Below, in pieces: positions 2,941 through 39,532 of a stretch of 64,000 nt of DNA. Made by a program: the position numbers and the translations under genes. The stretch spans positions 7,812,001 to 7,876,000 of the forward strand of contig NC_042999.1 of the NCBI RefSeq assembly GCF_006345805.1, given 5' to 3'. The first letter of the stretch is position 1; each line of letters begins with the position of its first letter. Source of the DNA: Octopus sinensis (Eukaryota). The notes under the pieces were generated by a model, which searched no databases, had not been told where the DNA came from, and saw only the letters and a program-made list of their open reading frames with translations.

Positions 2941-3822
2941 TTCCGGGTTCAGTCCTACTGCGTGGTATCTTGAGGAAGGGTCTCCTACTATAGTCTCGGG
3001 CCAACAAAAGCCCTGTGAGTGGATTTGGCAGACGGAAACTGAAAGAAGACTGTCGATTCGATCAACGCCGGTATGCAACTGGTACTTAATTTATCGATCC
3101 CAAAAGATGAAAGGCTTAGTCAATCTCAGCGGAATTTGAACTTAGAACGTAAAGACAGAGGAAGTACCTATTTCTTTATTACCCACAAGGGGCTAAACAT
3201 AGAAGGGACAAACAAGGACAGACAAAGACAGTAAGTCGATTAGATCGACACCAGTGCGTAACTGTTACTTAATTTATCGACCCCGAAAGGATGAATGGCA
3301 AAGTCGATCTCGGCGGAATTTGAACCCAGAACTTAAAGACAGACGAAATACCTATTTCTATTTCTTTACTACCCACAAGGGGCTAAACATAGAGGGAGGG
3401 GACAAACATGTACAGGCAAACGGATTAAGTCGATTACATCGACCCAAGTGCGTCACTGGTACTTACTTTATAGATCCCGAAAGGATGAAAGGCAAAGTCG
3501 ACCTCGGTGTAATTTGAACTCAGAACGCAGCGGCGGACGAAATACCACAAAGCATTTCGTCCGGCGTGCTAACGTTTCTGCCAGCTCGCCGCCTTATATG
3601 TGTATGTATTCATGTGTGTTTGTCCTCCCACTATCGCTTGAGAACCGACATTGGTGTGTTAATGTCCCCGTAACTTAGCGGCTCAGTTAAAGAATCCGAT
3701 AGAATAAGTAACAAGCTTACAAAGACTAAGTCCTGAGGGTCGATTTGTTCAACTAAAACTTTTCAAGGCAGTGCTCCAGCATGGCAGCTGTCAAATAACT
3801 GAAACAAGCAAAAGAATAAAAG
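2941..3822 (+). mobile_element. tRNA-derived SINE family S3, interrupted by an S2 insertion
   Basis: Head gggttcagtcctactgcgtgg...gacggaaactgaaagaag (2941-3050) and tail cgcttgagaaccgac...gtgctccagcatggc...actgaaacaag (3625-3822), as in copies at 33.1-33.5, 48.9-49.4 and 62.7-63.5 kb. Confidence 0.7.
3065..3593 (-). mobile_element. SINE family S2, three tandem core units
   Basis: Head ggcggcgagctggcagaaacgttagcacgccgg; core with B-box-like gagttcaaattcc and a ctttcatcctttcggggtc-type domain (resembles the Meta-SINE domain, from memory); core and tail repeated. Confidence 0.8.
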
Positions 3823-6131: not shown

Positions 6132-6730
6132 ATATGACCAAAGTATATATTTATTATGCAGTTTAATGAGAGATGAATTAAAAGTGTTTTGTCTCTGTTG
6201 ATATATGTGTATTAGTAAATCTTTTCGTGTGAGGGTATGAAGCGTTTATGACTTAGAATAGTAACAAATTAATGGCAAAAAAGAATCATATCCAAATTTC
6301 TATCAAATTTAGAACCGATTTCTTTTCCTAAGAGAAATCCATAAATACTTAATCCTCGTCTTAAAGCTCGATAATCTTCTCCTTTAAACTTAACTGGTTT
6401 TGTCAGGGGGTGCAGATTGCTACTTTATTCGCAAAGCATATATACGTATATAAATGCATACATACATACATACGTACGTACACACAGATGCATACATACT
6501 TGCGTACATACCTACATATACACAGATCTATACATAAATATATGCATACGTGTACATGCATAAATACACACACATACACACATACATATATACACAGATA
6601 CCCAGATATATACATGCATGCATACACACATACATAAACACATTCATGGATGCATACATGTATACATACATACATACATACATACAAATGTATACATAAA
6701 TATATACATACAAACGTACGTAATAGATAT

Positions 6731-6865
<135 letters not shown>

Positions 6866-7163
6866 AGTTTTTATTGTAGCCACACAGGGCTAAACACAGA
6901 ATAAAAATGGACGAAATACAATGTAGAATTTTTTCTTTTCGAGGTGGGATGGGTGGGGCAAGAAAAAAAAAAAAACGTTTGATCAATAGGGATCTGTGGG
7001 TTGTGTGGTGTGTAAAAAAGCAATATATATATATAATAAGGTTCACAGTTTAGGTGTAGCCTTGAAAGAAAAAAAAACCTACAAAAAAGACCAAGGTCAC
7101 CTCAGGCAATTCGAAAAAGAACACATGAGTAAGAGTCGCCTTACTTCTCGTTGTCTCTTTTGG

Positions 7164-10100: not shown

Positions 10101-10617
10101 CAGGTCTTTGAGGCTCTTACACCCCCCTTCTATTCCTATCCCTTCCCACATAATCTAGATGCGTGTCCAAGGTAGCGTTCCAATCCCCTACTAACAGTAA
10201 AGTCTAGACGTACCCAGGAAAACCTCTAGACGTCTGAAGAAATCCGCCCGACCCGTTAAGGACGGTGCATAAACTGCCATCAGACGGAATGCACACCCAT
10301 TTCTTCCATCCTGCCATCCCGTCCAAGACAACCGCCTACCCTCCGGTCTAGGAATATTGCTCTTACTTTTACTTTAGACTCTTTCGAAAAAGCACCGCAG
10401 TACCTCCACCACCCATGTTCGGCAGACAGGGAGAAAAATAAATGTCAAATTGATTGCCAAACATGGACTCGAGGGCCCGCGGCTTACTGAGTCTGGTTTC
10501 ACTGATAGCTACTATATCCACGTCCAGTGACTTGATGTCGTTTAGAAGGTAACCTTGCTTCCAAGCCGACGCCAAGCCACGCGCATTCACACAACCTAAT
10601 TTAAGCATACTTGACAT
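7164..10617 (-). pseudogene. ORF2 of copy A (APE endonuclease, reverse transcriptase, C-terminal Zn finger), frameshifted
   Basis: Fragments LGCVNARG...AISETRL; SYLDRIL...YTDHK; KSPGLDGLPYE; NFRPITLLNADLKIL; LDQSKAFDRVDH; RQGCPLS; SAYADD; KLLGVWF. Confidence 0.9.
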
Positions 10618-10686
10618 TTACGAAAATTGTGTTTTACACACTATATTAGAAGAGACAAGAGGCAAGAAGTGAGTCACTTACTCATT

Positions 10687-12289
10687 TTAAAGTTTCATTT
10701 TTTCTTCTTCTTCTTTTGTATCGTTTTTGATGAGGTGTTTGTATAGTTTTTTCGACAGGTATCGTTGATACCCCCTACCGCATTCGGAAATAATGTTTTC
10801 AGTATGTGGTGTTGTGCTTGTGTTATGTGTAAAATTCTGATGTGTTTTCGGTGGGTGTGTGCGGATGATTGTTTGTCTTAAAATCATCTTCACAGACGAC
10901 CATGTTAGATTTGATGTAGTCCATTAATTCTTTATTGTCTGTGTCTATTGCAGTTAGTTGTGTGTGTGGTTTTACGGGTTCATTACTTTTTTGATTGTCT
11001 AGGGGAATGTTGTCCTGAGTGAGATATCTCCCTGCTTTAATTCCTTGTTTGGTGGATTTTTTGGATCTTTTTCTTTTACCCCCTTTGGCTATTTGCCATT
11101 CCGTCGAACTTTCGTCGTCCGAGGTCAGCAGGGGTAGAGGAAAAAGAACAGGATCACTATGTATGCTTGTATAAATTGTTGATGTTTTGTGCGGTGTTTG
11201 TGTTGTTGTGGTTTAGGGGTAGCATTTGTCTTCTCGTCAGTGTTTTCTGTCTTTTTAATGTCGTCCTGGGTGTGGGGTGTGGGTCGATTTTTTGAAGATT
11301 CAACAAGTTTAATTGGTTGTGACGTCAACGGTGATTGTGTTGTACTGTTTTTCTTGGTGATGTTGTTGGGGTTTGTTTGCTGGTTTGTTGTTTTTCTTGG
11401 CGTTGTTCCATAATTGAGTGTGTTGGTGTTGGTGTTGGCAACAAGGGATTTTATTTGTTTTCTGAATTGTTCTTTCTTGTTTTTTCTGTACCAGATCGCA
11501 CTTGGCAATCAAATGTTCGGGGCTGCCACATTTGTAGCATCTAGGCTTTGCCTTCTTCTGCCATAACATATAGGCATTGCCCATTCTCCAAGTATATCTT
11601 GTCGGGTAGGCTCTCGATAGAGGCCCCCTCAATCTGGATGGTCCACAACTACTGTTTTTCCACCCCAATTGTCGTTTAGGTACACGGCTGTTTCTAGAAT
11701 ATTGATCTTTTTCAAGTGGTAACAGATTGCCCCTGTTATCCATTTGTTCGGCATATCGGGGTACATTTCTGATAGTAATTCTACTCACCCTCTGGTTTTT
11801 ATAATAAGGGACCATGATGATTTCATCATTTCCCAGAGACTCAGTAGAGTGAGCTTTTGCCACTTCCTGGTTAGGGAAGCGGACCACTACTGTGTTAAAC
11901 TGGGGACCCCAGTTTATATACTCTTTTTCTTTCATTATGTTTTTTAAACATTTCTCCACATCAGTTTTTGTAATCTGTTCATTTGGTTTTTTGTTTTTTT
12001 CTAATAATTTTATATACAATTGTCTTATTTTCAATTCTTGTTTTATATCTTGAGGTGTATGCAGGACTAAATCTTGTCCACGGGTTGTAAAGAGAGCTCT
12101 TGTTTCTATGAGCTCTTCATTTGTGAATGTAACAATCTCCTTTTTCTGGCGAAGAATATCTGCGAAATTTACTGTTGTTGACTTTTTTGTATTAACATCT
12201 TCACTATTAGATAGTTCATTTTTTATTGTTGTTCTTGTTGTTGCTGTTGTTTTTGTCAATAGTTTTCGTTTCAGTTTTATTTTTATCAT
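10687..12289 (-). pseudogene. ORF1 of copy A (gag-like, CCHC zinc knuckle), frameshifted
   Basis: ORF 11309..12289 contains PRCYKCGSPEHLIAKC (C-X2-C-X4-H-X4-C); continues in 10687..10893 up to the ORF2 spacer. Confidence 0.8.
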
Positions 12290-12763
12290 TTATGTTGTAG
12301 TCGTGTAGTGGTGGTGGTGGTGGTGGGTGGAGGTGGTGGTGGTAGCAGTTGTTGTCTCGTGGTTGCTGTTGTTAGTGGTGGTGTGGCGGTGGTGGCAGGC
12401 TGTTAACGCACGTGGTTGCAGCGTTCCTTTCACCGAATTTCACGTTTGCATTTTCCCGTGCGAACGTTCCTTTTTTTTTCTCTGTTCGTTTTCCAGACTA
12501 GAAAATGTTGTTCCAAAAAAGAACGCGACCAGCGTTCAACAATAAAATTTCTAGAGACATTTTCTAATGTCGAGAAGAAAATAACAGAAAGAAATGGGGT
12601 CGAAACTGCTCTGCCCCTAGGGGCGAATTCCTCCCTTGGAAAAGCACTCAAATGAAAGTTGGTTCCTTACAACCCTTATTTGCAAAAATCTACACAAAAA
12701 TTGGCCTATAAATATCAAAATAATGATTACCTTCGGAGCTGAAAAACGACATCACATCCGTCA

Positions 12764-12845
<82 letters not shown>
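12764..12845. repeat. (GATA)n between copies A and B
   Basis: gata run. Confidence 0.95.
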
Positions 12846-13244
12846 TGTTTCTTTATTAGCCACACAGGGCTGCACACAGATAGAACAAATTACAAGGTAG
12901 AGCTTTTCTTTTGAAGGTATAAAAAAAAAAAAAAAAAAAAAAAAAGGAAGGGGGAGTTCGATCAAAAGGGATCGTAAAAGGAGAGAAAGAGGACAAAAAT
13001 AAGGGGGTAAAAAAAAAAAAAAAAAAAAAAGGGGGGGGGAGAGGAAAAAAAATGATCAATAGGGATCGTTATCACAGAAATGTCAATATGAAGTGTAAAG
13101 GGGAGGACAGGTGAGGTTTACCCGTGGAAAGAAAAGCCTGCGGAAAAGACCACGGTAACCTCGGTCAATGAAGTCACATTTTATATTTCTTTTTTTTTTT
13201 TTTTTTTTTGCAAATAAGCAACTCTCTGTTTTCGATTTCTGGGT

Positions 13245-16200
13245 TCATAGGACTATGCTCAAGGTGGCTTCGTCATTCATACGTGCCATTCTTGCTACAT
13301 TCACCCATCTTTTTTTAAAACATTCGCTAGACAAAACTTGCCTCTCTACTCTCACTTTCCTTTTCAAGTGGTACTTGAAGAAGTTGATGAGAGATTGACC
13401 AGAGAGGAAAGTGTTTGTCTCCAATCCTTTCAGACGCGTCCACCAGATACATTCTTTCGCCATAGCCACAAGGATGATGAAAATAGCTCTTCCTTCCCGT
13501 TTGAAGGAAGGAGGCGTGACAATATTGACGATAGACTCAGCTGATAAACCGACTCGTCCCACACGTGACAGCAGTTGTTCGACATAAGCCCACAGGTCGG
13601 AAATTGTTGGACACTGAACGAGTGCGTGCAGAACGGTTTCGTCGCTCTGACCGCATCTCGGGCAGGTCGGCCCCGTGTTTCTCGAGCCGTGTCTGTAGAG
13701 CTTATCCCGAACGGGTAGCGCTTCTCGGTAGCACTGCCAGGCCAGGGATCTCTGGAAGTTGTCCATGGGCCCTGGCCCGAAAGTCGTCCCGAACAGGCGG
13801 GTCAGGTACTCCTCGTCGACGTCCAGGTTCGCCCCGAGCTCGTCGTCGTACCTCCACTAAACCCCTATAGAATGCTTTGGTTGTGTTGAAGTCACTTAAG
13901 GTCGACCCAGGACGGCAGAGTTGCTTGAGAGCAACGCGACACTCGCGGTGCCATTCGCCCTTCCTCGGCCTCTTTTTGATCCACGACTGCAGTTCGGTCA
14001 TGGAGACGAGCTGCGGGAAAGCGTGCCTCACAAACGGCGACCACACCTGTTCACCGTCGTCTACATAGAGCCAGAGATGTCGCAGTCTCAGCGCGTGCGT
14101 GCCCAGCCCAGCCCTCCTTTTAACGGGTGTTGACAGCAAATGGATCGCCTGACCATCGGGACGCATCCTTTCCACAAGAAGCGAAAGAGGATGCGTTGTA
14201 GTTTGGTGATGGTAGGGTCGGGACAAGGTACGACGGTCAGGCGGTAGTAGATGACGGACGCGATGTACGTGTTCGCCACCTCCGCTCGACCTTTTAGGGA
14301 CAGTTTCCTCTCGGCCCATTGCCGGGCGAGAGTGACCACCCTACTCGTTATCTCGTTCCAGTTCTTCTCCACTTGGAGGTCCGGACCAAACCAGACCCCG
14401 AGCAACTCAACCGGGCCGTCGGTCCAGCGTCCCACGACGGAGGCGCTGGTGGACGGCATGGGCTTGCTTCTCCAGGTGCCTAGTCGCAAGCCCACTGACT
14501 TTTCCCGGTTGATTTTCGCTCCTGTCACCGCTTCGTAGTTTTTCAGTGTCTCGCCGCCGACAGCTCGATGTGCTCGTGGCTAGACACTATGACGGTGACG
14601 TCGTCCGCGTATGCAGACACGCTCGTCCCGCATCCCAATTCTCGCGGGATGCCCCTTAGAGTCGCCAGCTTCCGCAGTAGTGGCTCAAGAGTCAATACGT
14701 ATAGAAGCGCCGAGAGGGGGCATCCCTGACGGACCGAACGTGCAATGTCGAAAGGTCTCGATAGATGTCCATTTACGCGAATTACCGAACGGATGCCTCT
14801 GTACAAGGCAGCTATCCAGCCGCGGAAGACGGGACCGAAACCAGCCGCTCTCAGGACTGCCTCCCAGTATCGATGGTCTACTACCCTATCAAAGGCTTTT
14901 GATTGATCCAAGTTGATCAGGGCCCCACCCATGCCAGGTTCGTTAACTACCCTGTCTATGATGTAGCGCATCAGATGGAGGTTGTCATGGATGGTCCGGC
15001 CTGGCACGGCGCATGTTTGCGCCTTGTCGACCAGTTTCTCGATGACAAGCGCCAACCTCTTGGCTAGCACCTTGGCCAAAATTTTCAAGTCTGCATTAAG
15101 CAGAGTGATGGGCCTAAAGTTATCTATTACATTTCCCTTGTTTAGATCTTTCTTCAGCAGTGTTACGGCTCCTCGGCTCACAAAACCAGGAATGCTCCCG
15201 TTTTGCTGCCAGTTGCAGTACACCGCCGCCAAGAGATCTCCAAACAAGTCTGGCATACAATTGTAAAGCTCGTAGGGTAGACCATCCAAACCCGGTGATT
15301 TGTCCCTCGAGCATTCTGCCATCGCTTCCCGCACTTCCGCCGCCGTGATGGCACCTTCGCAGCACCCTGCCTTTCTTGTCGAGAGTCGTGGTAGGCTATG
15401 TAGGTAGGCACTGAAGTCCACCCTACGTTCTTGCCCTCCACTCGTTCCGAACAGTCGGGCAAAATGCTGCTGAAAGGCCTCACACATTTTACTTGGCTCG
15501 AGCAATTCGCGCCCCTGTTCATCTACCAGTGACCGAATGGTGGCTTTGTTGCCCTGTTGCGCCTCTGCCACCCGGGCCTCTCTCGCGGCTCCAACACCTT
15601 CGTTCCTTAGAGCACGCATCCTAGCTCTGACAGCACATCCTTCGTGTTTGGCGTTGAAGTGTTGGTCGAGGGCCAACCTCGCCGCCAAAACGTCGGATGC
15701 GATGCCGCTTCTAATTGCCTCTTCTAGCTTTAACTTAACTAGCTCACCCTCTACTCTATTTCTATCTATGGCTAGTGCTTTGCTGTACCTAATCGCTTCT
15801 GCTTTTACTGCTCTCTTGAGGGCAAACCACCATTTGTTGTTGATGATGGCTCCCGTCAAAGCCCTCTTTACTAGTGTGCTAATCCGGTCTCTGAAAACTT
15901 GTCTCGATGGGAAAGACGCGTTTAGTTTCCAGTATCCGGGACCCTGCCTAAGTGTCTTACCTAAGTCTAGCGTACATGTCACAAGTTTGTGATCCGTGTA
16001 GCTGACTATGTGGAATTGTGGACATCCTATGCTATCTCTATCTACTGTCCTACACAGTATCCTATCTAGATACGATCTCGACGACCCGATGCGGTTGCTC
16101 CATGTCCACGTTGGCGCATTCGGGTGGTCTAGTCGAAACCTGTCAGACAGTTGAAAGCGTCTGAGCAGGTCTCTGAGGCATTTGCATCCCCGTCTATTCC

Positions 16201-16666
16201 TATCTCTACCCACGTAGTCTACATGCGTGTCCAAGGTAGCATTCCAATCCCCCACTAAGAGTAAAGGACGAGACGTTCCCAAGAAACTTCTAGACGTTGA
16301 AAGAAATCCGCCCGACCTGTTAAGGGCGGTGCGTAAACTGATACGAGCCGAAAAGCGCACCCATTGCTGCCGTCGACATCCAGGACGACCAGTCTACCCT
16401 CCGGGTCTACGAATATTGTCCTTACATTGAGATCCAGACTCTTGTGAAAAAGTACCGCGGTGCCACTACCGCCCATTCTCGGCAGACAGGGGAAAAATAA
16501 ATGTTGAACTGTCCGCCAAACATGGTCTTTAGGGCCCGCGGATTGTGGAGTCTGGTCTCGCTTATGGCTATGATTTCTAACTTATGTGACTTTATGTCAT
16601 TTAAGAGGTACCCTTGTTTCCAAGGGACCCCAAGCCACGCGCATTTACACAACCAATCTTGATCAT
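13245..16666 (-). pseudogene. ORF2 of copy B (APE-RT-CCHC), several small indels
   Basis: Starts MIKIGCVNA at 16666; 605-aa segment with VGDWNA, SYLDRIL, YTDHK, KSPGLDGL, RQGCPLS, YADD; C-terminal CPRCGQSDETVLHALVQC. Confidence 0.92.
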
Positions 16667-16697
16667 AGTTCTAATGAATTAGAATACAGAGGGTTAC

Positions 16698-18711
16698 TTA
16701 CTGCTCGAAAGTTTTTGCTTTCTCCTCCGTTGGTTTGTCCTCGAGAAGATCCCAGTACAGTTTCTTTGTGAGATATTTTTGGCATTTACCAACCGCACTG
16801 GGGAAAATGCCTTTGAGTGTGTGGTGCAGACTTTTGGAGATGTGTATTATTTTGATGTGGTCTGGTGGTGTTGTGTATGGGTGGTTGTTTGTTTTTATGT
16901 CATCTTCTGTTATGTTTGTTTTTGATTGGATGTATTCCATCAAATTTGTGTTTTTGGTGTCTATGGCTGTGAGCATGTTTGCTGTATATGTTTTTGTGGT
17001 GTTGGTGTGGCTGTTGTTTGCGTTGGGTTTTGAAATGTCTTCGGGAGATGTATTTCCCCCTGCTTTGTTCGTGTTTGCATTTGGTTTGGTTGTGTTTCTG
17101 CTCTTTATTTTCCTTCTTTTTGTAGCTATTTGCCATTCCTCACTGGTCGTTCGTCGTCTCCGACGAAATTTCTGAGGAATCAGAAGGGGGTAGGGGTATG
17201 TTGTGGGCTTCTATGTATGTCTGTGTAAGTGGTTGTGTTGTTGTTTTCGTTGTTGTTGGTTGTTGAGTGTTTGTGTGTGTTGAGTGCGGTATAAGGGATG
17301 GGGGATCAGTTTGTGTGTGTTTTCTTTGTTTTTCTGTTCCTTTGGGTTTTGCTGTTGATGGTAGTGTTGGTATTTTTCCAGGTGTCGAGTGGTTTTTGGT
17401 TGATGACGGATTAGCTTGGTGTGCTTCTCTTGTCGTCTTCTGTGTTGATGGTGGTGTGGGTAGTAGAGCTTTTTTTCCGGAGTGCTTTGGTTGTGGTAGT
17501 GGTTGTTGTTGTTGCTCTTGGTGTGCAGTGGTTGGGCACGTCTTTTTCAAGTGTGTTTCGCTTCCACACAAATAGCAGCGTGGTCGCCTGCCCTCTACCA
17601 CTATATAGAGTTTGTAGCCTCCTGGCAGTTCTATAGCGGTGGGTATCTTCTCTCTTGCTGCTTCATCCAATTGAAGCAGGAATTCGATTGATTTGCCCAC
17701 ATAGTCTTTCTCTCCTAGAACCGCGATTTCCAGGATGTTTGTCTCTGACATTGTCTCTGACATTTCAAAGCAGATGGCAGAGACCACCCATTGTGTTTCG
17801 ACATCAAATGGTATGTTTTTTATTTGGACTTTCGTGACCCTTTTGTTTAAATAGACTGGTATCATTACCAAGTCGTCCGAATGTAGCTCCAATGTGGAAA
17901 AACGTTTTGCTAAACTTTCGTTGAGGAAACGTACTTGGACTGTACCAAATTTGTTTCCCCAACTGATATATTCCTTGGAGTCCCATACAGGACGAAGGCA
18001 TTTATCGATTTTTTCCTGCGGTGCATTTTCTGTTCTTCTTGTTTTTTTGTTTATTACTTTATAAATTATTGTTTTTTTTTGCGTGTTTTCCACGATGTGT
18101 TGTGGAATATGAAGGTGCAATTTGTCTCCTTCTTTGGAGAAGAGTGCCTTTGTGCGGTTTATCTCTTGTGTGGTGAATGTTACAATTGTTCTTTTTTGTT
18201 TTGTTACGTCCGCAAAATTCGTTTTGAATTTGGCAGTAGAAGTGTTAATTGTGGCAGTGTTAATTGAAGTCATGGTAGTGGTGTTGGTGTTGGCGGTATT
18301 AGCAGCAGAAGGCTTGGATGTAGCATTTGACGTCGTAGTAGTGGTGTTGGTGTTGGCGGTGTTGTCTTTGGTAGGCGGCTTTGTGCCAATTTCGTTGTTG
18401 TTGTTGTTGGTGGTGATGGTGGTGGTGCTGGCATTCATGTTTTCGTTTGTATTCATTTTTGAAATCCCTTTCTCTGTCCCTTTATCATCAACAAGTGGTG
18501 TGGGGAGTGAGGGGAAATCTAAGTTAATGTCTTTGGTCGCGGCGATGGTGAATGCGACGTTAGATTTGTTGTTGTTGTTGTTGGTGGTGGTGATGGTGGT
18601 GACAGCGGTGTTCACGCTGCGATGTTTAGCAGCTAGTGGTAGCAATAGTGTTTTGCTACCGTTCTGCATGACTGGCGGGCTAGCCACGTGGTTTCTAGTT
18701 GCCATTTTCAA
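16698..18711 (-). pseudogene. ORF1 of copy B (Thr/Asn-rich N-terminus, CCHC knuckle)
   Basis: 523-aa ORF 17140..18711 with PRCYLCGSETHLKKTC; central block aligns by eye to A ORF1; continues in 16698..16976. Confidence 0.85.
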
Positions 18712-18922
18712 AATGAAAAATGGCTAAAAAACCCACGAAAGTTTTGAAAGTTTTTTTGTAATTTCGCCCATACAGGGCGGAATTCTACGTGAATAATTCT
18801 CAGGTTTTTTAGTGAATGAATTTGCACAACGATTAAAACAAAATATTTGACAACAAGGAGTTTTAAACATGTAAAAGTGGCCAACTTACTTGGAGCCGAT
18901 ATGACTAGCGTCCGTCCATTGT

Positions 18923-18954
18923 GATAGATGATAGATAAAGATAGATAGATAGAT

Positions 18955-19036
<82 letters not shown>

Positions 19037-19055
19037 GATAGATAGATAGATAGAT

Positions 19056-19086
<31 letters not shown>

Positions 19087-19182
19087 ATAGATAGATAATG
19101 GATGGTAATAGATAGATAGATAGTATAGATAGATAGATAGATAGATAGAGAGATAGATAGATAGAGAATAGATAGATAAGAG

Positions 19183-19216
<34 letters not shown>

Positions 19217-19434
19217 TATAGATAGATAGATAGATAGATAATGATGATATAGAAACTTTTCTTTAATTAGCCCACAGGCTGAATACAGAGGGGACAATAC
19301 ATATAGATAGATAAGATAGATAAAGATAGATAGATAGATAGATAGATAGATTGATAGATGGAAGATAATAGATAATAGATGGAAAGATAATAGATAGATA
19401 GGATAGATAGATATTAGAGATAGATAAAGAAAAT
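18923..19434. repeat. Degenerate (GATA)n between copies B and C, containing a ~45-bp retro-tail fragment
   Basis: gata variants; 19254-19300 resembles the Tx1/SINE 3' tail. Confidence 0.85.
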
Positions 19435-22107
19435 AGTTTTTCTTTATTAGCCACACAGGGCTGCACACAGATAAACAATTACAAGGTAGCTTTCTTTTTG
19501 AAGTAAAAAAAAAAAAAAAATATAAATAATAAAATAAAAAGGGGGTCGATCAAAAGGGATCGTAAAAGGAGAGAAAGAGGACAAAAAAAGGGGGTAAAAA
19601 AAAAGGGGGAGAGGAAAAAAAATTGATCAATAGGGATCGTTATCACAGAAATGTCAATATGAAGTGTAAAGGGGAGGACAGGTGAGGTTTACCCGTGGAA
19701 AGAAAAGCCTACGGAAAAGACCACGGTAACCTCGGTCAATGAAGTCACATGTTATATTTCTTTTTTTTTTTTTTTGCAAATAAGCAACTCTCTGTATTAA
19801 TTTTTACGGTTCATAGAATCATAGTCAAGGTGGCTTCGTCATTCATACGTGCCATCCTTGCTACATTCACCCATCTTTTTTTAAAACATTCACTAGACAA
19901 AACTTGCCTCTCTACTCTCACTTTTCTTTTCAAGTGATACTTGAAGAAGTTGATGAGAGATTGACCAGAGAGGAAAGTGTTTGTCTCTAATCCTTTCAGA
20001 CGCGTCCACCAGATACATTCTTTCGCCATAGCCAAAGTATGATAAAATAGCTCTTCCTTCTCGTTTGAAGGAAGAGGCGTGACGATATTAACGATAGACT
20101 CGGCTGATAAACCGACACGTCCCACACGTGACAGCAGTCGTTCGACATAAGCCCACAGGTGGAAATCGCTGGACACTGCACGATTGCGTGCAGAGCGGTT
20201 TCGTCGCTCTGCCCGCATCTCGGGCAGGTCGGCCCCGTGTTTCTCGAGCCATGCCTATAGAGCTTATCCCGAACGGGTAGCGCTTCTCGGTAGCACCGCC
20301 AGGCCAGGGATCTCTGGAAGTTGTCCATAGGTCCCGGGCCGAAAGTCGTTTGAAACAGGCGGGTCAGGTATTCCTCGTCGACGCCCAGGTTTGCACCGAG
20401 CTCGTCGTCGTACCTCCCCTCCACTAATCCCCTATAGAATGCTTTGGTTGTGTTGAAGTCACTCAAGGTCGACCCGGGACGGCAGAGTTGCTTGAGAGCA
20501 ACGCGACACTCGCGGTGCCATTCGCCCTTCTTCGGCCTCTTTTTGATCCACGACTGTAGTTCGGTCATGGAGACGAGTTGCGGGAATGCGTGCCTCACAA
20601 ACGGCGACCACACCTGTTCACCGTCGTCTACATAGAGCCGGAGATGTCGCAGTCTCAGCGCGTGTCTGCGCATCATCAACCACGGCATGCCCAGCCCTCC
20701 TTTTAACGGGTGTTGACAGCAAATGGATCGCCTGACCATCGGGACGCATCCTTTCCACAAGAAGCGGAAGAGGATGCGTTCTAGTTGGTGATGGTAGGGT
20801 CGGGACAAGGTACGACGGTCAGGCGGTAGTAGATGATGGACGCGATGTACGCGTTCACCACCTCCGCCCGACCTTTTAGGGACAGTTTCCTCTCGGCCCA
20901 TTGCTGCGAGAGTGACCACCCTACTCGTTATCTCGTTCCAGTTCTTCTCCATTGGAGGTCCGGACCGAACCAGACCCCGAGCAACTCAACCGGGCCGTCT
21001 GTCCAGCGTCCCACGACGGAGACTGGTGGACGGCATGGGCTTGCTTCTCCAGGTGCCGAGCCGCAAGCCCACTGACTTTTCCCGGTTGATTTTTGCTCCT
21101 GTCACCGCTTCGTAGTCTTTCAGTGTCTCGCCGCCACCCGCTCGATGTGCTCGTGGCTTGACACTATGACGGTGACGTCGTCCGCGTATGCAGACACGCT
21201 CGTCCCGCATCCTAATTCTCGCGGGATGCCCCTCAGAGTCGCCAGCTTCCGCAGTAGTGGCTCAAGAGTCAATACGTATAGAAGCGCCGAGAGGGGGCAT
21301 CCGTGACGGACCGAACGTGCAATGGTCGAAGGTTTCTCGATAGATGTCCATTTACGCGAATTACCGAACGGATGCCCCTGTACAAGGCACTATCCAGCCG
21401 CGGAAGCGGGACCGAAACCAGCCGCTCTCAGGACTGCCTCCAAGTATCGATGGTCTACTACCTATCAAGGCTTTCGATTGATCCAAGTTGATCAGGGCCC
21501 CACCCATGCCAGGTTCGTTAACTACCCTGTCTATGATGTAGCGCATCAGATGGAGGTTGTCATGGATGCTCCGGCCCGGCACGGCGCACGTTTGTGCGTT
21601 GTCGACCAGTTTCCTCTCCATGACAAGCGCCAACCTCTTGGCTAACACCTTTGTCAAAATTTCAGGTCTGCATTGAGCAGAGTGATTGGCCTAAAGTTAT
21701 CTATAATGTTCCCTTGTTTGGATCTTTCTTCAGCAGAGTTACAGCTCCTCGACTCACACAAACCGGGTATGCTCCCGTTTTGCTGCCAGTTGCAGTAGTA
21801 TACCGCTGCCAAACGTCTCCAAACAAGTCTGGCATACAATAGTAAAATTCGTAGGGTAGACCATCCAAACCCGGTGATTTTCCCCTCGAGCATTTGCCCT
21901 CAGCATTCTTCCCTCGCTCCCGCACTTCCGCCGCCGTGATGGCACCTTCGCAGCACCCTGCTTTTCTTGTCGAGAGTCGTAGCAGGCTATGTAGGTAGGC
22001 ACTGAAGTCTACCCTACGTTCTTGCCCTCCACTCGTCCCGAACAGTCGGGCAAAATGCTGCTGAAAGGCCTCACACATTTTACTTGTCTCGAGCAATTCG
22101 CGCCCCT
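19435..22107 (-). mobile_element. 5'-truncated Tx1 copy C (subfamily 2), many indels
   Basis: RT, C-terminal CCHC region and 3'UTR closely match B; truncated at cgcgcccct|atagattg. Confidence 0.9.
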
Positions 22108-22162
22108 ATAGATTGATAGATGGATGGATAGATGGATAGATTGATAGATGGATGGATAGATG

Positions 22163-22234
<72 letters not shown>

Positions 22235-22298
22235 TAGATAGATTGATAGATGGATGGATAGATGGATAGATTGATAGATGGATGGATAGAAGGATAGG

Positions 22299-22371
<73 letters not shown>

Positions 22372-22428
22372 TGATAGATGGATGGATAGATGGATAGATT
22401 GATAGATGGATGGATAGATGGATAGATA
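22108..22428. repeat. (GATA/GATG)n between copies C and D
   Basis: Compound gata/gatg run. Confidence 0.9.
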
Positions 22429-24367
22429 TGTTTCTTTATTAGCCACACAGGGCTGCACACAGATAGAACAAATTACAAGGTAGAGCTTTTCTTTTGAAGG
22501 TTTAAAAAAAAAAGGAAGGGGAGTTTCGATCAAAAGGGATCGTAAAAGGAGAGAAAGAGGACAAAAAAAGGGGGGTTTAAAAAATAAAGGGGGAGAGGAA
22601 AAAAAAATTGATCAATAGGGATCGTTATCACAGAAATGTCAATATGAAGTGTAAAGGGGAGGACAGGTGAGGTTTACCCGTGGAAAGAAAAGCCTACGGA
22701 AAAGACCACGGTAAACTCGGTCAATGAAGTCACATTTTATATTTCTTTTTTTTTTTTTGCAAATAAGCAACTCTCTGTTTTCGATTTCTGGGTTCATAGG
22801 ACTATGCTCAAGGTGGCTTCGTCATTCATACGTGCCATTCTTGCTACATTCACCCATCTTTTTTTAAAACATTCGCTAGACAAAACTTGCCTCGCTACTC
22901 TCACTTTCCTTTTCAAGTGGTACTTGAAGAAGTTGATGAGAGATTGACCAGAGAGGAAAGTGTTTGACTCCAATCCTTTCAGACGCGTCCACCAGATACA
23001 TTCTTTCGCCATAGCCACAAGGATGATGAAAATAGCTCTTCCTTCCCGTTTGAAGGAAGGAGGCGTGACAATATTGACGATAGACTCAGCTGATAAACCG
23101 ACTCGTCCCACACGTGACAGCAGTTGTTCGACATAAGCCCACAGGTCGGAAATTGTTGGACACTGAACGAGTGCGTGCAGAACGGTTTCGTCGCTCTGAC
23201 CGCATCTCGGGCAGGTCGGCCCCGTGTTTCTCGAGCCGTGTCTGTAGAGCTTATCCCGAACGGGTAGCGTTTCTCGGTAGCACTGCCAGGCCAGGGATCT
23301 CTGGAAGTTGTCCATGGACCCTGGCCCGAAAGTCGTCCCGAACAGGCGGGTCAGGTACTCCTCGTCGACGTCCAGGTTCGCCCCGAGCTCGTCGTCGTAC
23401 CTCCCCTCCACTAAACCCCTATAGAATGCTTTGGTTGTGTTGAAGTCACTTAAGGTCGACCCAGGACGGCAGAGTTGCTTGAGAGCAACGCGACACTCGC
23501 GGTGCCATTCGCCCTTCCTCGGCCTCTTTTTGATCCACGACTGCAGTTCGGTCATGGAGACGAGCTGCGGGAAAGCGTGCCTCACAAACGGCGACCACAC
23601 CTGTTCACCGTCGTCTACATAGAGCCAGAGATGTCGCAGTCTCAGCGCGTGTCTGCGCATCATCAACCACGGCATGCCCAGCCCTCCTTTTAACGGGTGT
23701 TGACAGCAAATGGATCGCCTGACCATCGGGACGCATCCTTTCCACAAGAAGCGAAAGAGGATGCGTTGTAGTTTGATGATGGTAGGGTCGGGACAAGGTA
23801 CGACGGTCAGGCGGTAGTAGATGACGGACGCGATGTACGTGTTCGCCACCTCCGCTCGACCTTTTAGGGACAGTTTCCTCTCGGCCCATTGCCGGCGAGA
23901 GTGACCACCCTACTCGTTATCTCGTTCCAGTTCTTCTCCACTTGGAGGTCCGGACCAAACCAGACCCCGAGCAACTCAACCGGGCCGTCTGTCCAGCGTC
24001 CCACGACGGAGGCGCTGGTGGACGGCATGGGCTTGCTTCTCCAGGTGCCTAGTCGCAAGCCCACTGACTTTTCCCGGTTGATTTTCGCTCCTGTCACCGC
24101 TTCGTAGTTTTTCAGTGTCTCGCCGACCAGCTCGATGTGCTCGTGGCTAGACACTATGACGGTGACGTCGTCCGCGTATGCAGACACGCTCGTCCCGCAT
24201 CCCAATTCTCGCGGGATGCCCCTTAGAGTCGCCAGCTTCCGCAGTAGTGGCTCAAGAGTCAATACGTATAGAAGCGCCGAGAGGGGGCATCCCTGACGGA
24301 CCGAACGTGCAATGTCGAAAGGTCTCGATAGATGTCCATTTACGCGAATTACCGAACGGATGCCTCT
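22429..24367 (-). mobile_element. 5'-truncated Tx1 copy D (subfamily 2), nearly identical to B
   Basis: ORFs 23864..24430 and 22794..23849 encode RT (QGCPLS, YADD) through to the CCHC finger with one frameshift near 23890; the 5' break abuts (GATA)n at 24368-24400. Confidence 0.92.
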
Positions 24368-25899: not shown

Positions 25900-26128
25900 T
25901 TGAACTGTGGCAGAAACGTTAGCACGCCAGGCGAAATGCGTTGCCGTATTTCGTCTACCGCTACGTTCTGAGTTCAAATTCCGCCGAGGTCGACTTTACC
26001 TTTCATCCTTTCGGGGTTGATTAAATAAGTACCAGTTACGCACTGGGGTCGATGTAATCGACTTAATCCGTTTGTCTGTCCTTGTTTGTACCCTCTGTGT
26101 TTAGCCCCTTGTGGGCAATAAAGAAATA
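25900..26128 (+). mobile_element. SINE S2 ending in Tx1-like tail
   Basis: Head, core, then ...ctctgtgtttagccccttgtgggcaataaagaaata followed by unique flank. Confidence 0.8.
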
Positions 26129-27747: not shown

Positions 27748-27950
27748 GTTACGCCGGACGAAATGCTTAGCAGTATTTCGTCTGTCGCGACGTTCTAAGT
27801 TCAAATTCCGCCGAGCTCAACTTTGCCTTTCATCCTTTCGGGGTCGATAAATTAAGTATCAGATGCGCACTGGGGTCAATCTGATCGACTGGCCCCCCCT
27901 CTCTTCAAAACTTTCGGGCGTTGTGCCTAGAGTAGAAATTAATATTATTC
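27748..27950 (+). mobile_element. SINE S2 variant lacking the Tx1-like tail
   Basis: Core followed by the alternative end ...gcgttgtgcctagagtagaaattaatattatt. Confidence 0.7.
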
Positions 27951-28744: not shown

Positions 28745-30550
28745 CACAAGTGGCCTGCTAGAAATACCAGCCAAATCTGCTTCAATTCATACCCTACTCT
28801 CCTTTTTAAAAGGGTACGTTGAATAATAGGATCCTTGGCGCTTTGCACAAGTGACCTGCTAGAAATACCAGCCAAATCTGCTTCAATTCATACCCTACTC
28901 TCTGTTTTAAAAGGGTACGTTGGTTAATAGGATCCTTGGCGCTTTGCACAAGTGGCCTGCTAGAAATACCAGCCAAATCTGCTTCAATTCATACCCTACT
29001 CTCTTTTGTAAAAGGGTACGTTGGATAATAGGATCCTTGGCGCTTTGCACAAGTAACCTGCTAGAAATACCAGCCAAATCTGCTTCAATTCACACCCTTC
29101 TCTTTTTTAAAAGGGCACGTTGAATAATAGGATCCTTGGCGCTTTGCACAAGTGGCCTGCTAGAAATACCAGCCAAATCTGCTTCAATTCATACCCTACT
29201 CTCTTTTGTAAAAGGGTACGTTGGATAATAGGATCCTTGGCGCTTTGCACAAGTGACCTGCTAGAAATACCAGCCAAATCTGCTTCAATTCACACCCTTC
29301 TCTTTTTTAAAAGGGCACGTTGAATAATAGGATCCTTGGCGCTTTGCACAAGTGGCCTGCTAGAAATACCAGCCAAATCTGCTTCAATTCATACCCTATT
29401 CTCTTTTTTAAAAGGGCACGTTCGATAATAAGATCCTTGGCGCTTTGCACAAGTGACCTGCTAGAAATACCAGCCAAATCTGCTTCAATTCATACCCTAC
29501 TCTCCTTTTTAAAAGGGTACGTTGAATAATAGGATCCTTGGCGCTTTGCACAAGTGGCCTGCTAGAAATACCAGCCAGATCTGCTTCAATTCATACCCTA
29601 CTCTCTTTTTTAAAAGGGCACGTTGAATAATAGGATCCTTGGCGCTTTGCACAAGTGGCCTGCTAGAAATACCAGCCAAATCTGCTTCAGTTCATACCCT
29701 ATTCTCTTTTTTAAAAGGGCACGTTGAATAATAGGATCCTTGGCGCTTTGCACAAGTGGCCTGCTAGAAATACCAGCCAAATCTGCTTCAATTCATACCC
29801 TACTCTCTTTTGTAAAAGGGTACGTTGGATAATAGGATCCTTGGCGCTTTGCACAAGTGACCTGCTAGAAATACCAGCCAAATCTGCTTCAATTCACACC
29901 CTTCTCTTTTTTAAAAGGGCACGTTGAATAATAGGATCCTTGGCGCTTTGCACAAGTGGCCTGCTAGAAATACCAGCCAAATCTGCTTCAATTCATACCC
30001 TATTCTCTTTTTTAAAAGGGCACGTTCGATAATAAGATCCTTGGCGCTTTGCACAAGTGACCTGCTAGAAATACCAGCCAAATCTGCTTCAATTCATACC
30101 CTACTCTCTTTTGTAAAAGGGTACGTTGAATAATAGGATCCTTGGCGCTTTGCACAAGTGGCCTGCTAGAAATACCAGCCAGATCTGCTTCAATTCATAC
30201 CCTACTCTCTTTTTTAAAAGGGCACGTTGAATAATAGGATCCTTGGCGCTTTGCACAAGTGGCCTGCTAGAAATACCAGCCAAATCTGCTTCAGTTCATA
30301 CCCTATTCTCTTTTTTAAAAGGGCACGTTGAATAATAGGATCCTTGGCGCTTTGCACATGTGACCTGCTAGAAATACCAGTCAAATCTGCTTCAATTCAT
30401 ACCCTACTCTCTTTTTTAAAAGGGCACGTTCGATAATAAGATCCTTGGCGCTTTGCACAAGTGACCTGCTAGAAATACCAGCCAAATCTGCTTCAATTCA
30501 TACCCTACTCTCTTTTTTAAAAGGGCACGTTGAATAATAGGATCCTTGGC
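28745..30550. repeat. ~100-bp satellite, 18 copies, with higher-order structure
   Basis: Unit cacaagtggcctgctagaaataccagccaaatctgcttcaattcataccctactctc...aaaagggtacgttgaataataggatccttggcgctttg. Confidence 0.95.
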
Positions 30551-31330: not shown

Positions 31331-31784
31331 CTGGGTGAATGGAGGAGTCAGTCGGCAAAGCGGTTCCACCAGCCTCCCTACTACGACTACTACCAACTTG
31401 TTTCTCCGTCTTCCGTCATTTTCTTGAATGAAACCAAACCAAGCAGACCTATCCAGCCAGATTACAGAAGGGACAGGCCATTCCCAAAACACTCCTCCTC
31501 CGCCTCATTCGTCTTCCCCATTCCATGCCAAACCTTCCTTTTCCCAAATTAATGGAATCAACCACCGGCAGCGAGTTTATCAAAACCTCTTTCTCTTCTT
31601 CTCTATTTCTCCACATTCACCTCTTCTCAATATATATATAAATATATATATGTTTGTATATATATATATATATATGTATGTATATGTGTATGTATATACA
31701 CACACACGCACGCAACGGTTTCATTTACTCATTGTTTCTATTGAACTTGCACGCTCTCATTCTCTCTGTTTGCCTATCTATCAG

Positions 31785-31833
<49 letters not shown>

Positions 31834-31922
31834 ACCTATCTACCTATCTATCTATCTATCTACCTATCTATCTATCTATCTATCGATCTATCTAATCTAT
31901 CTATCTATCTATCTATCTATCT

Positions 31923-32259
31923 AAAAAAGAAATATAACATGTGACTTCATTGACCGAGGTTACCGTGGTCTTTTCCGTAGGCTTTTCTTTCCACGGGTAA
32001 ACCTCACCTGTCCTCCCCTTTACACTTCATATTGACATTTCTGTGATAACGATCCCTATTGATCAATTTGTTTTCCTTTCCCTTTTTTTCCTCTCCCCCC
32101 CTTTTTTATTTTATTCCCTACCTTTTTTTGTCCTCTTTCTTTCCCTTTACGATCCCTTTTGATCGAAAACCAACCCCCCTTTTTTTACCCCCAAAAGAAA
32201 AGCTCTACCTTGTTATTTGTCCTGTCTGTGTGCAGCCCTGTGTGGCTAATAAAGAAACA
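31923..32259 (+). mobile_element. 3'UTR-only Tx1 copy E (subfamily 2), plus strand
   Basis: Reverse complement of the B/D 3'UTR, ending aataaagaaaca|tatctatc; (TATC)n on both sides (about 31820-31922 and 32260-32343). Confidence 0.9.
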
Positions 32260-32327
<68 letters not shown>

Positions 32328-32562
32328 GATCTATCTATCTATCTGTGTGTCTGTCTGTATATCTAAAAATTTGTTTTTCTCTCCTTTTTTACTTCTCTTG
32401 CTCAGATATCCCCCCCCCCCGGCGCTCTGCTGTATATCAAGTTGTCAATCTCTCCGTCACTGCCATTCTCTCTCTCTCTTTTCCGCTCTCTCCCATTCTC
32501 TCCCCTTCTCTCTCAGCCATTCTATCGCCCCCTCTCTCTCCCCTGTATATCTTTTATCTTTT

Positions 32563-36019: not shown

Positions 36020-36780
36020 GCAAATTCGATTACATTCACCCCAGTGTTCAACAGGGACTTATTTTATCGATTCCGAAGGGGTGAAAGGCAAACTCGACCT
36101 CGAAATACCTATTTCTTTACTACTCACAAGGGGCTAAACACAGATGGGACAAACAAGGACGGACATAGGTATTAAGTCGATTACATCGACCCCAGTTCGT
36201 AACTGGTACTTAATTTATCGACCCCGAAAGGATGAAAGGCAAAGTCGACTTCGGCGGAATTTGAACTCAGAACTTAACGGCAGACGAAATACCACTAAGC
36301 ATTTCGCCCGGTGTGCTAATGTTTCTGCCCGCGCGCTGCCTTGGTGGGGAGACGAATATATTGAATAGAAAGGCGGCGAGCTGGCAGAAAGGTTAGCACG
36401 CCGGGCGAAATGCTTAGTGGTATTTCGCCTTCCTCTACGTTCTGAGTTCAAATTCCGCCGAGGTCGTCTTTGCCTTTCATCCTTTCGGGGTCGATTAAAT
36501 AAGTACCAGTTACGCACTGGGGTCGATATAATCGACTTAATTCGTTTGCCTGTCCTTGTTTGTCCTCTCTGTGTTTAGCCACTTGTGGGTAGTAAAGAAA
36601 TAGGTATTTCGTCTGCCGCTACGTTCTGAGTTCAAATTCCGCCGAGGTCGACTTTGCTTTTCACCCTTTCGGGGTCGATATATTAAGAACAAGGGAAACA
36701 CTGGGGTCGATGTTATCGACGAGTCCACCCCCACACCAAATTCCAGGCCTTGTGTGCCTTTAGTAGAAAGGATTATTATT
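36020..36780. mobile_element. Two divergently oriented SINE S2 copies (36020-36330 minus; 36372-36780 plus), each head-core-tail-core
   Basis: S2 motifs on both strands. Confidence 0.75.
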
Positions 36781-37887: not shown

Positions 37888-38506
37888 TTTTAATTGCACC
37901 AGATATATTTATGGTGATCGTGAACGAAAGAACACGTTAATATTGTTTGACTATCTCAAGTGGAATCGTCGTCGTCAACAACAACAAGAAGAACAGAAAC
38001 CGCAGTGCATACGCACCTAGAATGTCTGACAGGACGAAGAACAACAAAAAGCTACCTTATGCAAACATTTTTTGGGGCAAAAATCCGCGCAAATATGGAG
38101 CACATTGCCGAAAGAACTAAAGCTTAAGAATATCCTGTCCCCCAAGACAGGAACCAACCTCTGAGAACCCATCATAGACGCGCACAAGGGAAGGTAACCG
38201 AACTGAGATTTGACAGGATCTGGAATGCATATTTTGGTCCATTCAAAGAAGAAATGGCGACAGTCTTGACAGAAGTTTTAGTAAAATCTCCTTCATCGCG
38301 AGGAGAGCGCATGTAGCCATCTTTAGACATGCCATGTCTAAAACAGAGGGTGATGCTAAATCGCAAACCTCAATTGTGACACACCTGCCTAGAAGCAGCT
38401 CCCATACACTATTTAGGAAGGAAAGGCACGAGACTCAGCACCACAAGCATTGACAACGATGGTGACCCTGGGTAGTCGCCACCTTCGTGGTACAATACGA
38501 ACAAAT

Positions 38507-38741
38507 GGCGGTGAGCCGGCAGAATCGTTAGCACAACGGGCGAAATGCTGAGCGGTATTTCGTCTGCCGTTACGTTCTGAGTTCAAATTCCGCCGAGGTC
38601 GACTTTGCCTTTCATCCTTTCGGGGTCGATAAATTAAGTACCAGTTGCGCACTGGGGTCTATGTAATCGACTTAATATCTTTGTCTGTTGTCCTTGCTTG
38701 TCCTCGTCTATGTTTAGCCCCTTGTGGGTAATAACGAAATA
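38507..38741 (+). mobile_element. SINE S2 ending in Tx1-like tail, with 15-bp TSD
   Basis: TSD ggtacaatacgaaca at 38489-38503 and 38742-38756. Confidence 0.85.
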
Positions 38742-39297
38742 GGTACAATACGAACAGATGGTCAATGCACACGTAACTTTCGACGATGTTGTCGGGTGGG
38801 GACCCGATAATCGTACAAAACCCCGCAAGAGCACAAGTCACTACCAAGAGTGTGTCTTGTAAAGTATTCCTAGAGGAAGACCTTAAAATTCGTTATTGCA
38901 TGCTCAAAAATATACAATACAATTCTATATTCTGAAATTGAAGCCAAAAAAAAAAATGCTGACTCACCAGATCACTTGAACAACATGATTACATCAACAG
39001 TTCAACTCTAAATATTCACACGAAATTCACCCTTTATATGTACAGCGTGTGGAAGGCCAGAATCAGATCCCGGCGATCTTATAAGTCAGATTTCTTCACT
39101 TGCATCATTTCGTCAATATACAATTGTATTGCGTGATGCTGAGCAAACATATTCATGTAAACATATACGTACAAGTTTGCCTACTCACATTCATAGTTCT
39201 ACATTATATAAAAATACTCACAGCTTATTTTGCTGGGTATGATGGAAAGTGTCCAGTTGTCCACAGCCAGCAGACTAAGGTGACACTTGTTTAGTGG

Positions 39298-39425: not shown

Positions 39426-39532
39426 GTGCACTGGCAGAAACTTTAGCACGCCGGGCGAAATGCGTAGCCGTATTTCGTCTGCCGTAACGTTCTGAGTTCA
39501 AATTCCGCTGAGGTCGACTTTGCCTTTCATCC

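Follow-up and report, generated by a model that had tools for sequence, protein, structure and literature searches.

A candidate stringent-type SINE-LINE partnership in octopods: the dispersed SINE S2 and a microsatellite-associated L1/Tx1-like LINE family

The S2 element and the LINE copies around it

The DNA analyzed here, hereafter the window, is a stretch of 64,000 bp of Octopus sinensis (NC_042999.1, positions 7,812,001 to 7,876,000) that contains copies of a short interspersed element (SINE), called S2, together with copies of an L1/Tx1-like long interspersed element (LINE) residing in TATC microsatellite arrays. An earlier note, made from the sequence alone, had drawn attention to the similarity between the 3' tail of S2 and the 3' end of this LINE, and had proposed that the LINE family or a relative mobilises S2. 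The S2 features of the window, including the copy at 38504-38741 with its target site duplication (TSD), are the following.

38489-38503, plus strand: left copy of the 15-bp TSD, GGTACAATACGAACA, a perfect direct repeat
38504-38741, plus strand: S2 SINE copy, with a LINE-like tail from about 38685
38685-38741, plus strand: LINE-homologous 3' tail of S2, with a hairpin formed by GCCC (38717-38720), the loop CTTGT and GGGT (38726-38729), then AATAACGAAATA
38742-38756, plus strand: right copy of the 15-bp TSD, GGTACAATACGAACA, a perfect direct repeat
36110-36329, minus strand: S2 copy, from blastn and comparison of copies
36372-36602, plus strand: S2 copy, followed by a head-to-tail partial SINE unit with a different tail at 36603-36776
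25909-26128, plus strand: S2 copy in which the 3' strand of the hairpin is the GGGC variant
3075-3593, minus strand: tandem S2 units, covering element positions 1-235, then 48-235, then 48-142

The 15-bp TSD had been described as bracketing an element that starts at 38507. The duplication was found as described, but comparison with five other near-complete copies suggests that the left boundary is at 38504 (AATGGCGG...), abutting the TSD. The terminus of this copy is AATAACGAAATA, one mismatch away from the family consensus AATAAAGAAATA, which is the form in which the tail had been quoted. According to blastn, the S2 family comprises six near-complete copies and five fragments in the 64 kb, with 84-91% identity to the 38504-38741 copy. 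It is a short, non-coding, dispersed and multi-copy element (11 copies or fragments), flanked by a TSD (38489/38742), and the LINE-like tail is located at the exact terminus in all six near-complete copies. Four parts can be told apart: the head, which contains a B-box-like GAGTTCAAATTCC; the central block TTTCATCCTTTCGGGGTCGATAAATTAAGTACCAG; a tail rich in T, G and C; and the terminus ...TAGCCCCTTGTGGGTAATAAAGAAATA. The B-box-like motif is visible by eye, which suggests that the head may derive from a tRNA; no tRNA was called in S2 by ARAGORN or Rfam, and two Rfam miRNA matches stem from the inverted S2 pair at 36110-36602. A relaxed, poly(A)-dependent (Alu-like) partnership with an L1 element was considered and rejected, since S2 ends in ...AATAAAGAAATA without an A-run and carries the LINE-like tail.

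Partial head-to-tail S2 arrays are present at 3075-3593 (minus strand) and 36023-36720, where the units that come after a full one (1-235) begin at position 48 (GGTATTTCG). The junction invariably reads ...GAAATA followed by GGTAT, with GAAATA doubled once, and the lone TSD at 38489 likewise begins GGTAC. S2 may have an insertion preference for a GGTAY site inside older SINE copies, the 5' junction being resolved by homology; unequal crossing-over is an alternative origin for these arrays. At 39433-39532 there is also a 5' fragment of S2 (positions 12-111), which breaks off within the central domain and is followed by unrelated sequence.

The only LINE family in the window is the TATC-resident, L1/Tx1-like one, represented by the following features.

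31924-32259, plus strand: 5'-truncated L1/Tx1-like LINE of 336 bp, lying between (CTAT)n at 31774-31923 and (TATC)n at 32260-32344; compared tail at 32205-32259, hairpin strands AGCC at 32234-32237 and GGCT at 32244-32247
12846-18922, minus strand: near full-length LINE, with the 3' end (12846) adjoining the TATC array at 12764-12845 and the 5' end adjoining the array at 18923-19426
17140-18711: ORF1 with a CCHC knuckle, belonging to the LINE at 12846-18922
6866-12763, minus strand: divergent LINE copy, with the 3' end (..TTCTGTGTTTAGCCCTGTGTGGCTACAATAAAAACT) adjoining the TATC array at 6723-6865 and a TGTGTTTAGCCC stretch nearer to S2
19437-22107, minus strand: LINE copy, with the 3' end adjoining the TATC array at 18923-19426
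22429-24367, minus strand: LINE copy, with the 3' end adjoining the TATC array at 22108-22428
19255-19303, minus strand: heavily 5'-truncated LINE tail of about 50 nt (GTATTGTCCCCTCTGTATTCAGCCTGTGGGCTAATTAAAGAAAAG) in the middle of a TATC array, with TTGTCCCCTCT in common with S2

The open reading frames (ORFs) of the LINE copies are broken. ORF2 fragments of the copy at 12846-18922 match the Pfam domains Exo_endo_phos, RVT_1 and zf-RVT, and the best PDB match of the window ORF2 is human L1 ORF2p (E=3e-33), with R2 proteins at E=6e-17 or weaker. The nearest named proteins are from Argonauta hians and Acanthosepion pharaonis. Because this domain set and the microsatellite-specific position match the Tx1 group, assignment of the LINE to that group of the L1 clade is plausible; L1-Tx1 families are listed in octopus repeat annotations (PMC13282606, PMC8967140). 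TATC repeats lie next to all five LINE 3' ends of the window and to the mini-copy, with array on both sides of the 5'-truncated copies, while not a single S2 copy of the 64-kb window is located inside a TATC array, in agreement with what had been noted earlier. In the subfamily from which the mini-copy at 19255-19303 derives, the tail (TTGTCCCCTCT...) resembles S2 more closely than it does in the main window subfamily. Between 6723 and 24411 four LINE copies are arranged head-to-tail on the minus strand, with a (TATC)n array between each, and related LINEs in other assemblies (loci L003, L004, L128-L131) are likewise arranged in tandem, repeating every ~6.5-7.5 kb; repeated insertion at the same target fits this organization. 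Just upstream of the plus-strand LINE fragment there is a 101-bp satellite (28745-30550; ~18 copies, 94% identity, higher-order period of 402 bp).

The shared tail and its hairpin

The alignment proposed in the earlier note, between the S2 tail and the LINE end at 32205-32259, could be reproduced. The S2 consensus tail and the LINE consensus 3' end show 38 matches in 47 positions plus one 3-nt gap over the last ~50 nt, and the match is terminal in both elements. Its local score of 40 was reached by none of 5000 dinucleotide-preserving shuffles (15.1±2.7, maximum 32), and a blastn comparison of the LINE end with the window found the S2 tail at E=0.001. When both strands of the whole 64-kb window were scanned with the S2 tail, with S2 copies masked, the best matches were the five LINE 3' termini and the mini-copy in the TATC array (scores 31-45), the next unrelated site scoring 27. 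Identity between the S2 tail and the window LINE tail is 76-81%, and much of the in-window score is due to a shared terminal box, GG.TAATAAAGAAA (an 11-nt AATAAAGAAA box). On window data alone, the similarity is real, though not overwhelming; judging from the aligned sequences, homology of the two tails goes beyond chance. Insertion of an S2 copy into the LINE was discarded as its origin: the tail continues directly from the LINE 3' untranslated region (UTR) in all copies and lineages, without SINE body.

Both tails can form a small hairpin, with different pairings in each element, as had been described. Each stem has 4 bp: in the LINE (32234-32247), AGCC pairs with GGCT around the loop CTGTGT, and in S2 (38717-38729) GCCC pairs with GGGT or GGGC around the loop CTTGT. 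This apical hairpin was part of the minimum-free-energy structure of 8 of the 10 tails folded. S2-type tails have an extra lower stem, in which UCUGUGU(U) pairs with AAUAAAGA, so that the AATAAA box lies inside a stem-loop that ends the RNA. The covariation of the hairpin was evaluated by counting pairs in an ungapped 17-nt alignment of 11 distinct tail lineages, with 500 shuffles as reference. Standard pairs occupied 90.9% of the cells of the apical 4-bp stem, whose loop has the pattern YWTGT, against 66.7±5.3% in shuffles (0/500 as high), and the covariation score was 0.55 against 0.15 (0/500). Both sides had changed in three of the four pairs, and when the 3' partner was slid by 1-3 columns as a control, pairing dropped to 12-48%. 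One stem pair is swapped from G-C to C-G between the SINE and LINE of Argonauta and S2, and the window LINE retains the 4-bp stem with a 6-nt loop.

The tail was also followed in comparative loci, among which L002, from Argonauta hians, is the most informative. It holds a LINE whose ORF2 is 70% identical in amino acids to the window ORF2, and a SINE, present in seven copies, that shares its central domain with S2. The tail of this SINE (...CTTTGTCTGTCCTTCTGTGTTCGGCCCTTGTGGCTAATAGAGAAAT) and the LINE terminus at L002:12650 (...CTTTGTCTTGGTAATTCTGTGTCGGCCCTTGTGGCTAATAAAGAAAT) share 57 nt, with 49/58 identical and a score of 66 against 14.9±2.7 in shuffles (z=19); z is 12 when the terminal box is left out. 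The S2 tail itself is 95% identical over 21-22 nt to the Argonauta LINE termini at L002:12628-12649 and L125:18836-18856, and the Argonauta SINE and LINE tails both have GGCC/GGCT where S2 has GCCC/GGGT. At L125, also from Argonauta, two LINE termini with the same tail run into (TATC)n as in the window. The L002 LINE lineage with the SINE-like tail lies outside TATC arrays, its two adjacent termini continuing with TTAATTAC... and with CTAT then TTTTAAAA.... In L127 (JGI metagenome 3300045642, 1990-2105), a LINE with an ORF2 67% identical to that of Argonauta ends in ...CTGTCCTTGCCTTTTGTATCGTCCTTAATGTTTCCGGGCCCTTGTGGCCAATAAAAGAAATC followed by (ATT)n, its tail being colinear with the SINE tails across ~60 nt. 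The microsatellite association has apparently switched within the LINE family, between (ATT)n and (TATC)n. Locus L001 ends 113 nt past the ORF2 stop codon, before any tail, and the cuttlefish locus L126 gave no tail matches. The recurrence across loci indicates that the tail is a property of the LINE family, kept through octopod divergence and common to SINEs in at least two species. The C-terminus of the Argonauta LINE ORF2 is 61% identical to a protein annotated as 'MAG: zinc-binding domain-containing protein [Herbaspirillum sp.]' (P0106), which is probably cephalopod DNA binned into a bacterial metagenome-assembled genome (MAG).

More distant LINE lineages (L003, L004, L128 and L130, with 42-57% ORF2 identity) keep a GGC-YWTGT-GCC hairpin with its YWTGT loop. 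In these lineages (A)AATAAA is preceded by a further hairpin that varies in sequence (L003 6890-6945, L004 12120-12170, L128 10133-10175, L130 9980-10020), and its stems TTGTAC/GTACAA, CTGTGTA/TACACAG and TTGTATA/TATACAA look covariation-like. In the window, S2-like bodies with other tails are present at 27755-27945 and 36603-36776 (both plus strand), ending in ...AAAACTTTCGGGCGTTGTGCCTAGAGTAGAAATTAATA and ...CCAAATTCCAGGCCTTGTGTGCCTTTAGTAGAAAGGA(TTA)n, and these tails resemble the 3' end of L004 (CAAAAACTTCAAGGCCTTGTGCCTT). There may be several SINE subfamilies, each paired with a different lineage of the L1/Tx1-like LINE family.

The central block of S2 has a much wider distribution. The stretch GCCTTTCATCCTTTCGGGGTCGATAAA (positions ~93-137, e.g. 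38599-38643) is present with 90-100% identity in more than 120 contigs of unrelated JGI metagenomes (L005-L124), which share these positions and no other part of S2. No S2 tails were found among these contigs, retrieved with a 20-nt pattern, and a 34-nt pattern from the S2 core gave zero matches in the metagenome scan. The contigs are evidently SINE DNA of other animals and, as only positions ~93-137 are shared with them, the block is a deeply conserved SINE domain. It could be either a Nin/Deu or a CORE domain, the annelid-type metagenome matches fitting Nin/Deu as well as the MIR-like CORE that was initially suspected.

Candidate driver of S2 and alternative explanations

As far as can be judged from sequence, S2 is probably the stringent-type partner of an octopod L1/Tx1-like LINE family, with a sister lineage of the window copies as its likely driver. 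S2 would be a non-autonomous octopod SINE whose terminal ~50-60 nt were copied from the 3'-terminal module of such a LINE. At the extreme 3' end of the RNA this module would fold into an apical 4-bp G/C stem with a YWUGU loop and a lower stem formed by UCUGUGU and AAUAAAGA. The ORF2 protein of a member of the LINE family would bind the shared tail on the S2 RNA, and target-primed reverse transcription would then start at the S2 tail, resulting in stringent-type trans-mobilisation. Recognition of the RNA tail would be common to the whole family and the insertion site specific to each lineage, be it (TATC)n, (ATT)n or no microsatellite, and the driver would probably be a sister lineage of the TATC-resident copies of the window, not those copies themselves. 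That insertion context varies among close lineages while the tail is kept favours a sister LINE as driver, a reading that is also consistent with the moderate level of identity of S2 to the window LINE. Thus, mobilisation of S2 by this Tx1 family or a relative, as put forward in the earlier note, gains support from the tail homology, the Argonauta pair (z=19) and the hairpin. Between the two drivers considered there, the sister LINE without the target specificity is favoured, given the non-TATC lineage in L002, the (ATT)n context of L127 and the moderate match of the window copies.

Several observations weigh against this interpretation. Once the terminal AATAAAGAAA box is removed, the in-window similarity drops to z=2.5-3.2 and is equalled by 52-127 of 5000 shuffles, so the LINE copies of the window are no close match to S2. 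The hairpin stem has only 4 bp, the 17-nt windows were chosen by the analyst and the sequences are related, while folding z values of single tails are weak (+0.3 to -2.9), most tails not being significantly below shuffles. RNAalifold found no structure on an unsupervised MAFFT alignment, because of a gap inside the 5' strand of the stem, and recovers the stem on the hand-anchored alignment only. A clean TSD flanks only one S2 copy and the copies have diverged by 9-16% from one another, so current activity is not demonstrated. The non-TATC status of the Argonauta sister lineage comes from two adjacent copies only and, since the comparison covered the window and selected comparative loci, a better match to the tail in another LINE clade is possible.

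A different driver, which we regard as unlikely but worth keeping in mind, would be the TATC-resident LINE subfamily of the window itself, acting on S2 in trans with its target specificity relaxed or uncoupled; integration of S2 would then be dispersed because its RNA lacks a (UAUC)n 3' extension. No other LINE family is present in the window and, S2 copies aside, the S2 tail finds its best matches there in the termini of this subfamily; TATC-resident copies with the same tail exist in Argonauta too. In addition, eight tails were recovered from the Argonauta loci with ...GAAATCTA as anchor (seven SINEs and the LINE at L002:12650), all eight of which read CTAT, i.e. one microsatellite unit, after GAAAT. 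In the two Argonauta SINE copies with detectable TSDs, the TSDs (CTATTTCAAGGAA and TATTATCTTT) begin with (C)TAT. Such a start could result from microhomology priming at a TAT(C)-like nick, a lead that comes from two informative TSDs. However, TAT microhomology is lacking in the single window TSD of S2 (GGTAC...), S2 and the window LINE are just 76-81% identical and their similarity is weakly significant outside the terminal box, and the tightest SINE-LINE tail pair of Argonauta belongs to a non-TATC lineage.

Less probable still is that the tail is a relic, captured long ago from an ancestral LINE by an S2 that is now dead or moved by an unrelated LINE. The divergence among S2 copies (9-16%), the broken ORFs of the window LINE and the drift between the S2 and window LINE tails would agree with this. 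Against it, the tail has been retained at the exact terminus in 6/6 near-complete copies, the tail of the Argonauta SINE tracks that of the local LINE, and the hairpin is preserved by compensatory changes, suggesting that the tail was under selection while the element amplified.

A transfer in the opposite direction, by which the LINE family would have taken its 3' end from the SINE through template switching or insertion, seems very improbable. Sequence comparisons reveal similarity without polarising the transfer; yet the hairpin and an AATAAA-type terminus are found in L003, L004, L128 and L130 (42-57% ORF2 identity) without the remaining SINE-like tail, so the module is ancestral to the LINE family, and no LINE carries SINE body sequence. 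Finally, chance or convergence on a polyadenylation-signal-like AATAAA in T/G-rich sequence is hardly credible: although the 11-nt AATAAAGAAA box contributes a large share of the in-window score, 0/5000 shuffles reach that score, LINE termini rank first window-wide, the Argonauta pair has z=12 even without the box, and the match is terminal in both elements in two species.

Relation to described partnerships and significance

The octopus SINEs OK, OR1 and OR2 reportedly go back to Ohshima and Okada in 1994. These elements, like the tRNA-Core and tRNA-Deu SINEs that dominate octopus repeat content (PMC8967140, PMC13282606), are tRNA-type elements that resemble S2 in being octopod and endowed with a highly conserved central domain, and possibly in the origin of the head, and S2 may belong to one of these named families (OK, OR1, OR2, tRNA-Core or tRNA-Deu). 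No LINE partner for octopus SINEs is named in the literature examined; such a pair may already be curated in Repbase, which lay outside that scope. In bivalves, SINEs with highly conserved domains have tails of 35-61 nt that are 72-95% identical to the 3' UTR ends of LINEs from four clades (Martelossi et al., 2024; PMC11481361). These are, like S2, mollusc elements with a conserved central domain, and their tails provide evidence comparable in kind and strength to that for S2; the term Tx1 is absent from the text of that work (PMC11481361).

That SINEs and LINEs may share tails has long been known (Ohshima and Okada; reviewed in PMC3747384). The eel elements UnaL2 and UnaSINE1 form a stringent-type pair (Kajikawa and Okada, 2002, as cited in PMC3747384) and, according to that citation, have in common a conserved 3' tail, whose stem-loop ends the RNA and which is presumably recognised by the LINE reverse transcriptase, as would be the case for S2 and its LINE. 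As summarised there, UnaL2 belongs to the L2 clade, ends in (TGTAA)n and had its partnership proven by a retrotransposition assay, whereas the S2 pair is known from sequence and its LINE is L1/Tx1-like and microsatellite-associated. In the L1 clade stringent pairs are rare, the cited cases being one maize/sorghum L1 lineage with its SINEs and SINEX-3_CR/L1-1_CR of Chlamydomonas (Ohshima, 2012, 2013; PMC3472496, PMC3747384), which agrees with the earlier remark that shared tails are uncommon in the L1/Tx1 clade. Those pairs also have a conserved 3' stem-loop common to SINE and LINE, with compensatory stem changes, but they are from plants and algae, with poly(A) ends and without target specificity.

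Within the Tx1 group one SINE partnership has been described, that of SINEU and Tx1-Mar in crocodilians (Kojima, 2015; PMC4494074). There too a target-specific Tx1-group LINE is thought to mobilise a SINE, on the basis of a shared target preference and of shared 5' heads derived from small nuclear RNA (snRNA). SINEU is poly(A)-ended and keeps the target preference of the LINE, while S2 shares the 3' tail and lies outside the microsatellite target of its LINE. The teleost LINEs Kibi and Koshi, Tx1 elements specific for microsatellites (Kojima and Fujiwara, 2004, as cited in PMC4494074), are described there as apurinic/apyrimidinic endonuclease (APE)-type elements of the L1/Tx1 group with microsatellite-specific insertion, like the window LINE; their targets are given as (TC)n and (TTC)n, instead of (TATC)n. 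A SINE partner with a shared tail is not described for them in the literature examined.

With shared SINE-LINE tails already known, what appears to be new here is a stringent-type tail common to a dispersed SINE and a microsatellite-associated L1/Tx1-like LINE. The family would represent a candidate LINE engine for octopod SINE expansion, and an animal case of the stringent recognition of 3' ends within the L1/Tx1 lineage, where such pairs are rare (PMC3472496). The information obtained also leads to a question that can be tested, i.e. whether template recognition and target-site choice are separable in a target-specific LINE. More tentatively, a LINE that confines its own copies to (TATC)n/(ATT)n safe havens might drive a genome-wide and octopod-specific expansion of SINEs, with the SINE bearing the structured module of the LINE for 3' recognition while escaping the target restriction, and needing at most one TAT(C) unit at the nick. 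If this is true, recognition of the RNA and choice of the target would be separable in a Tx1-type element.

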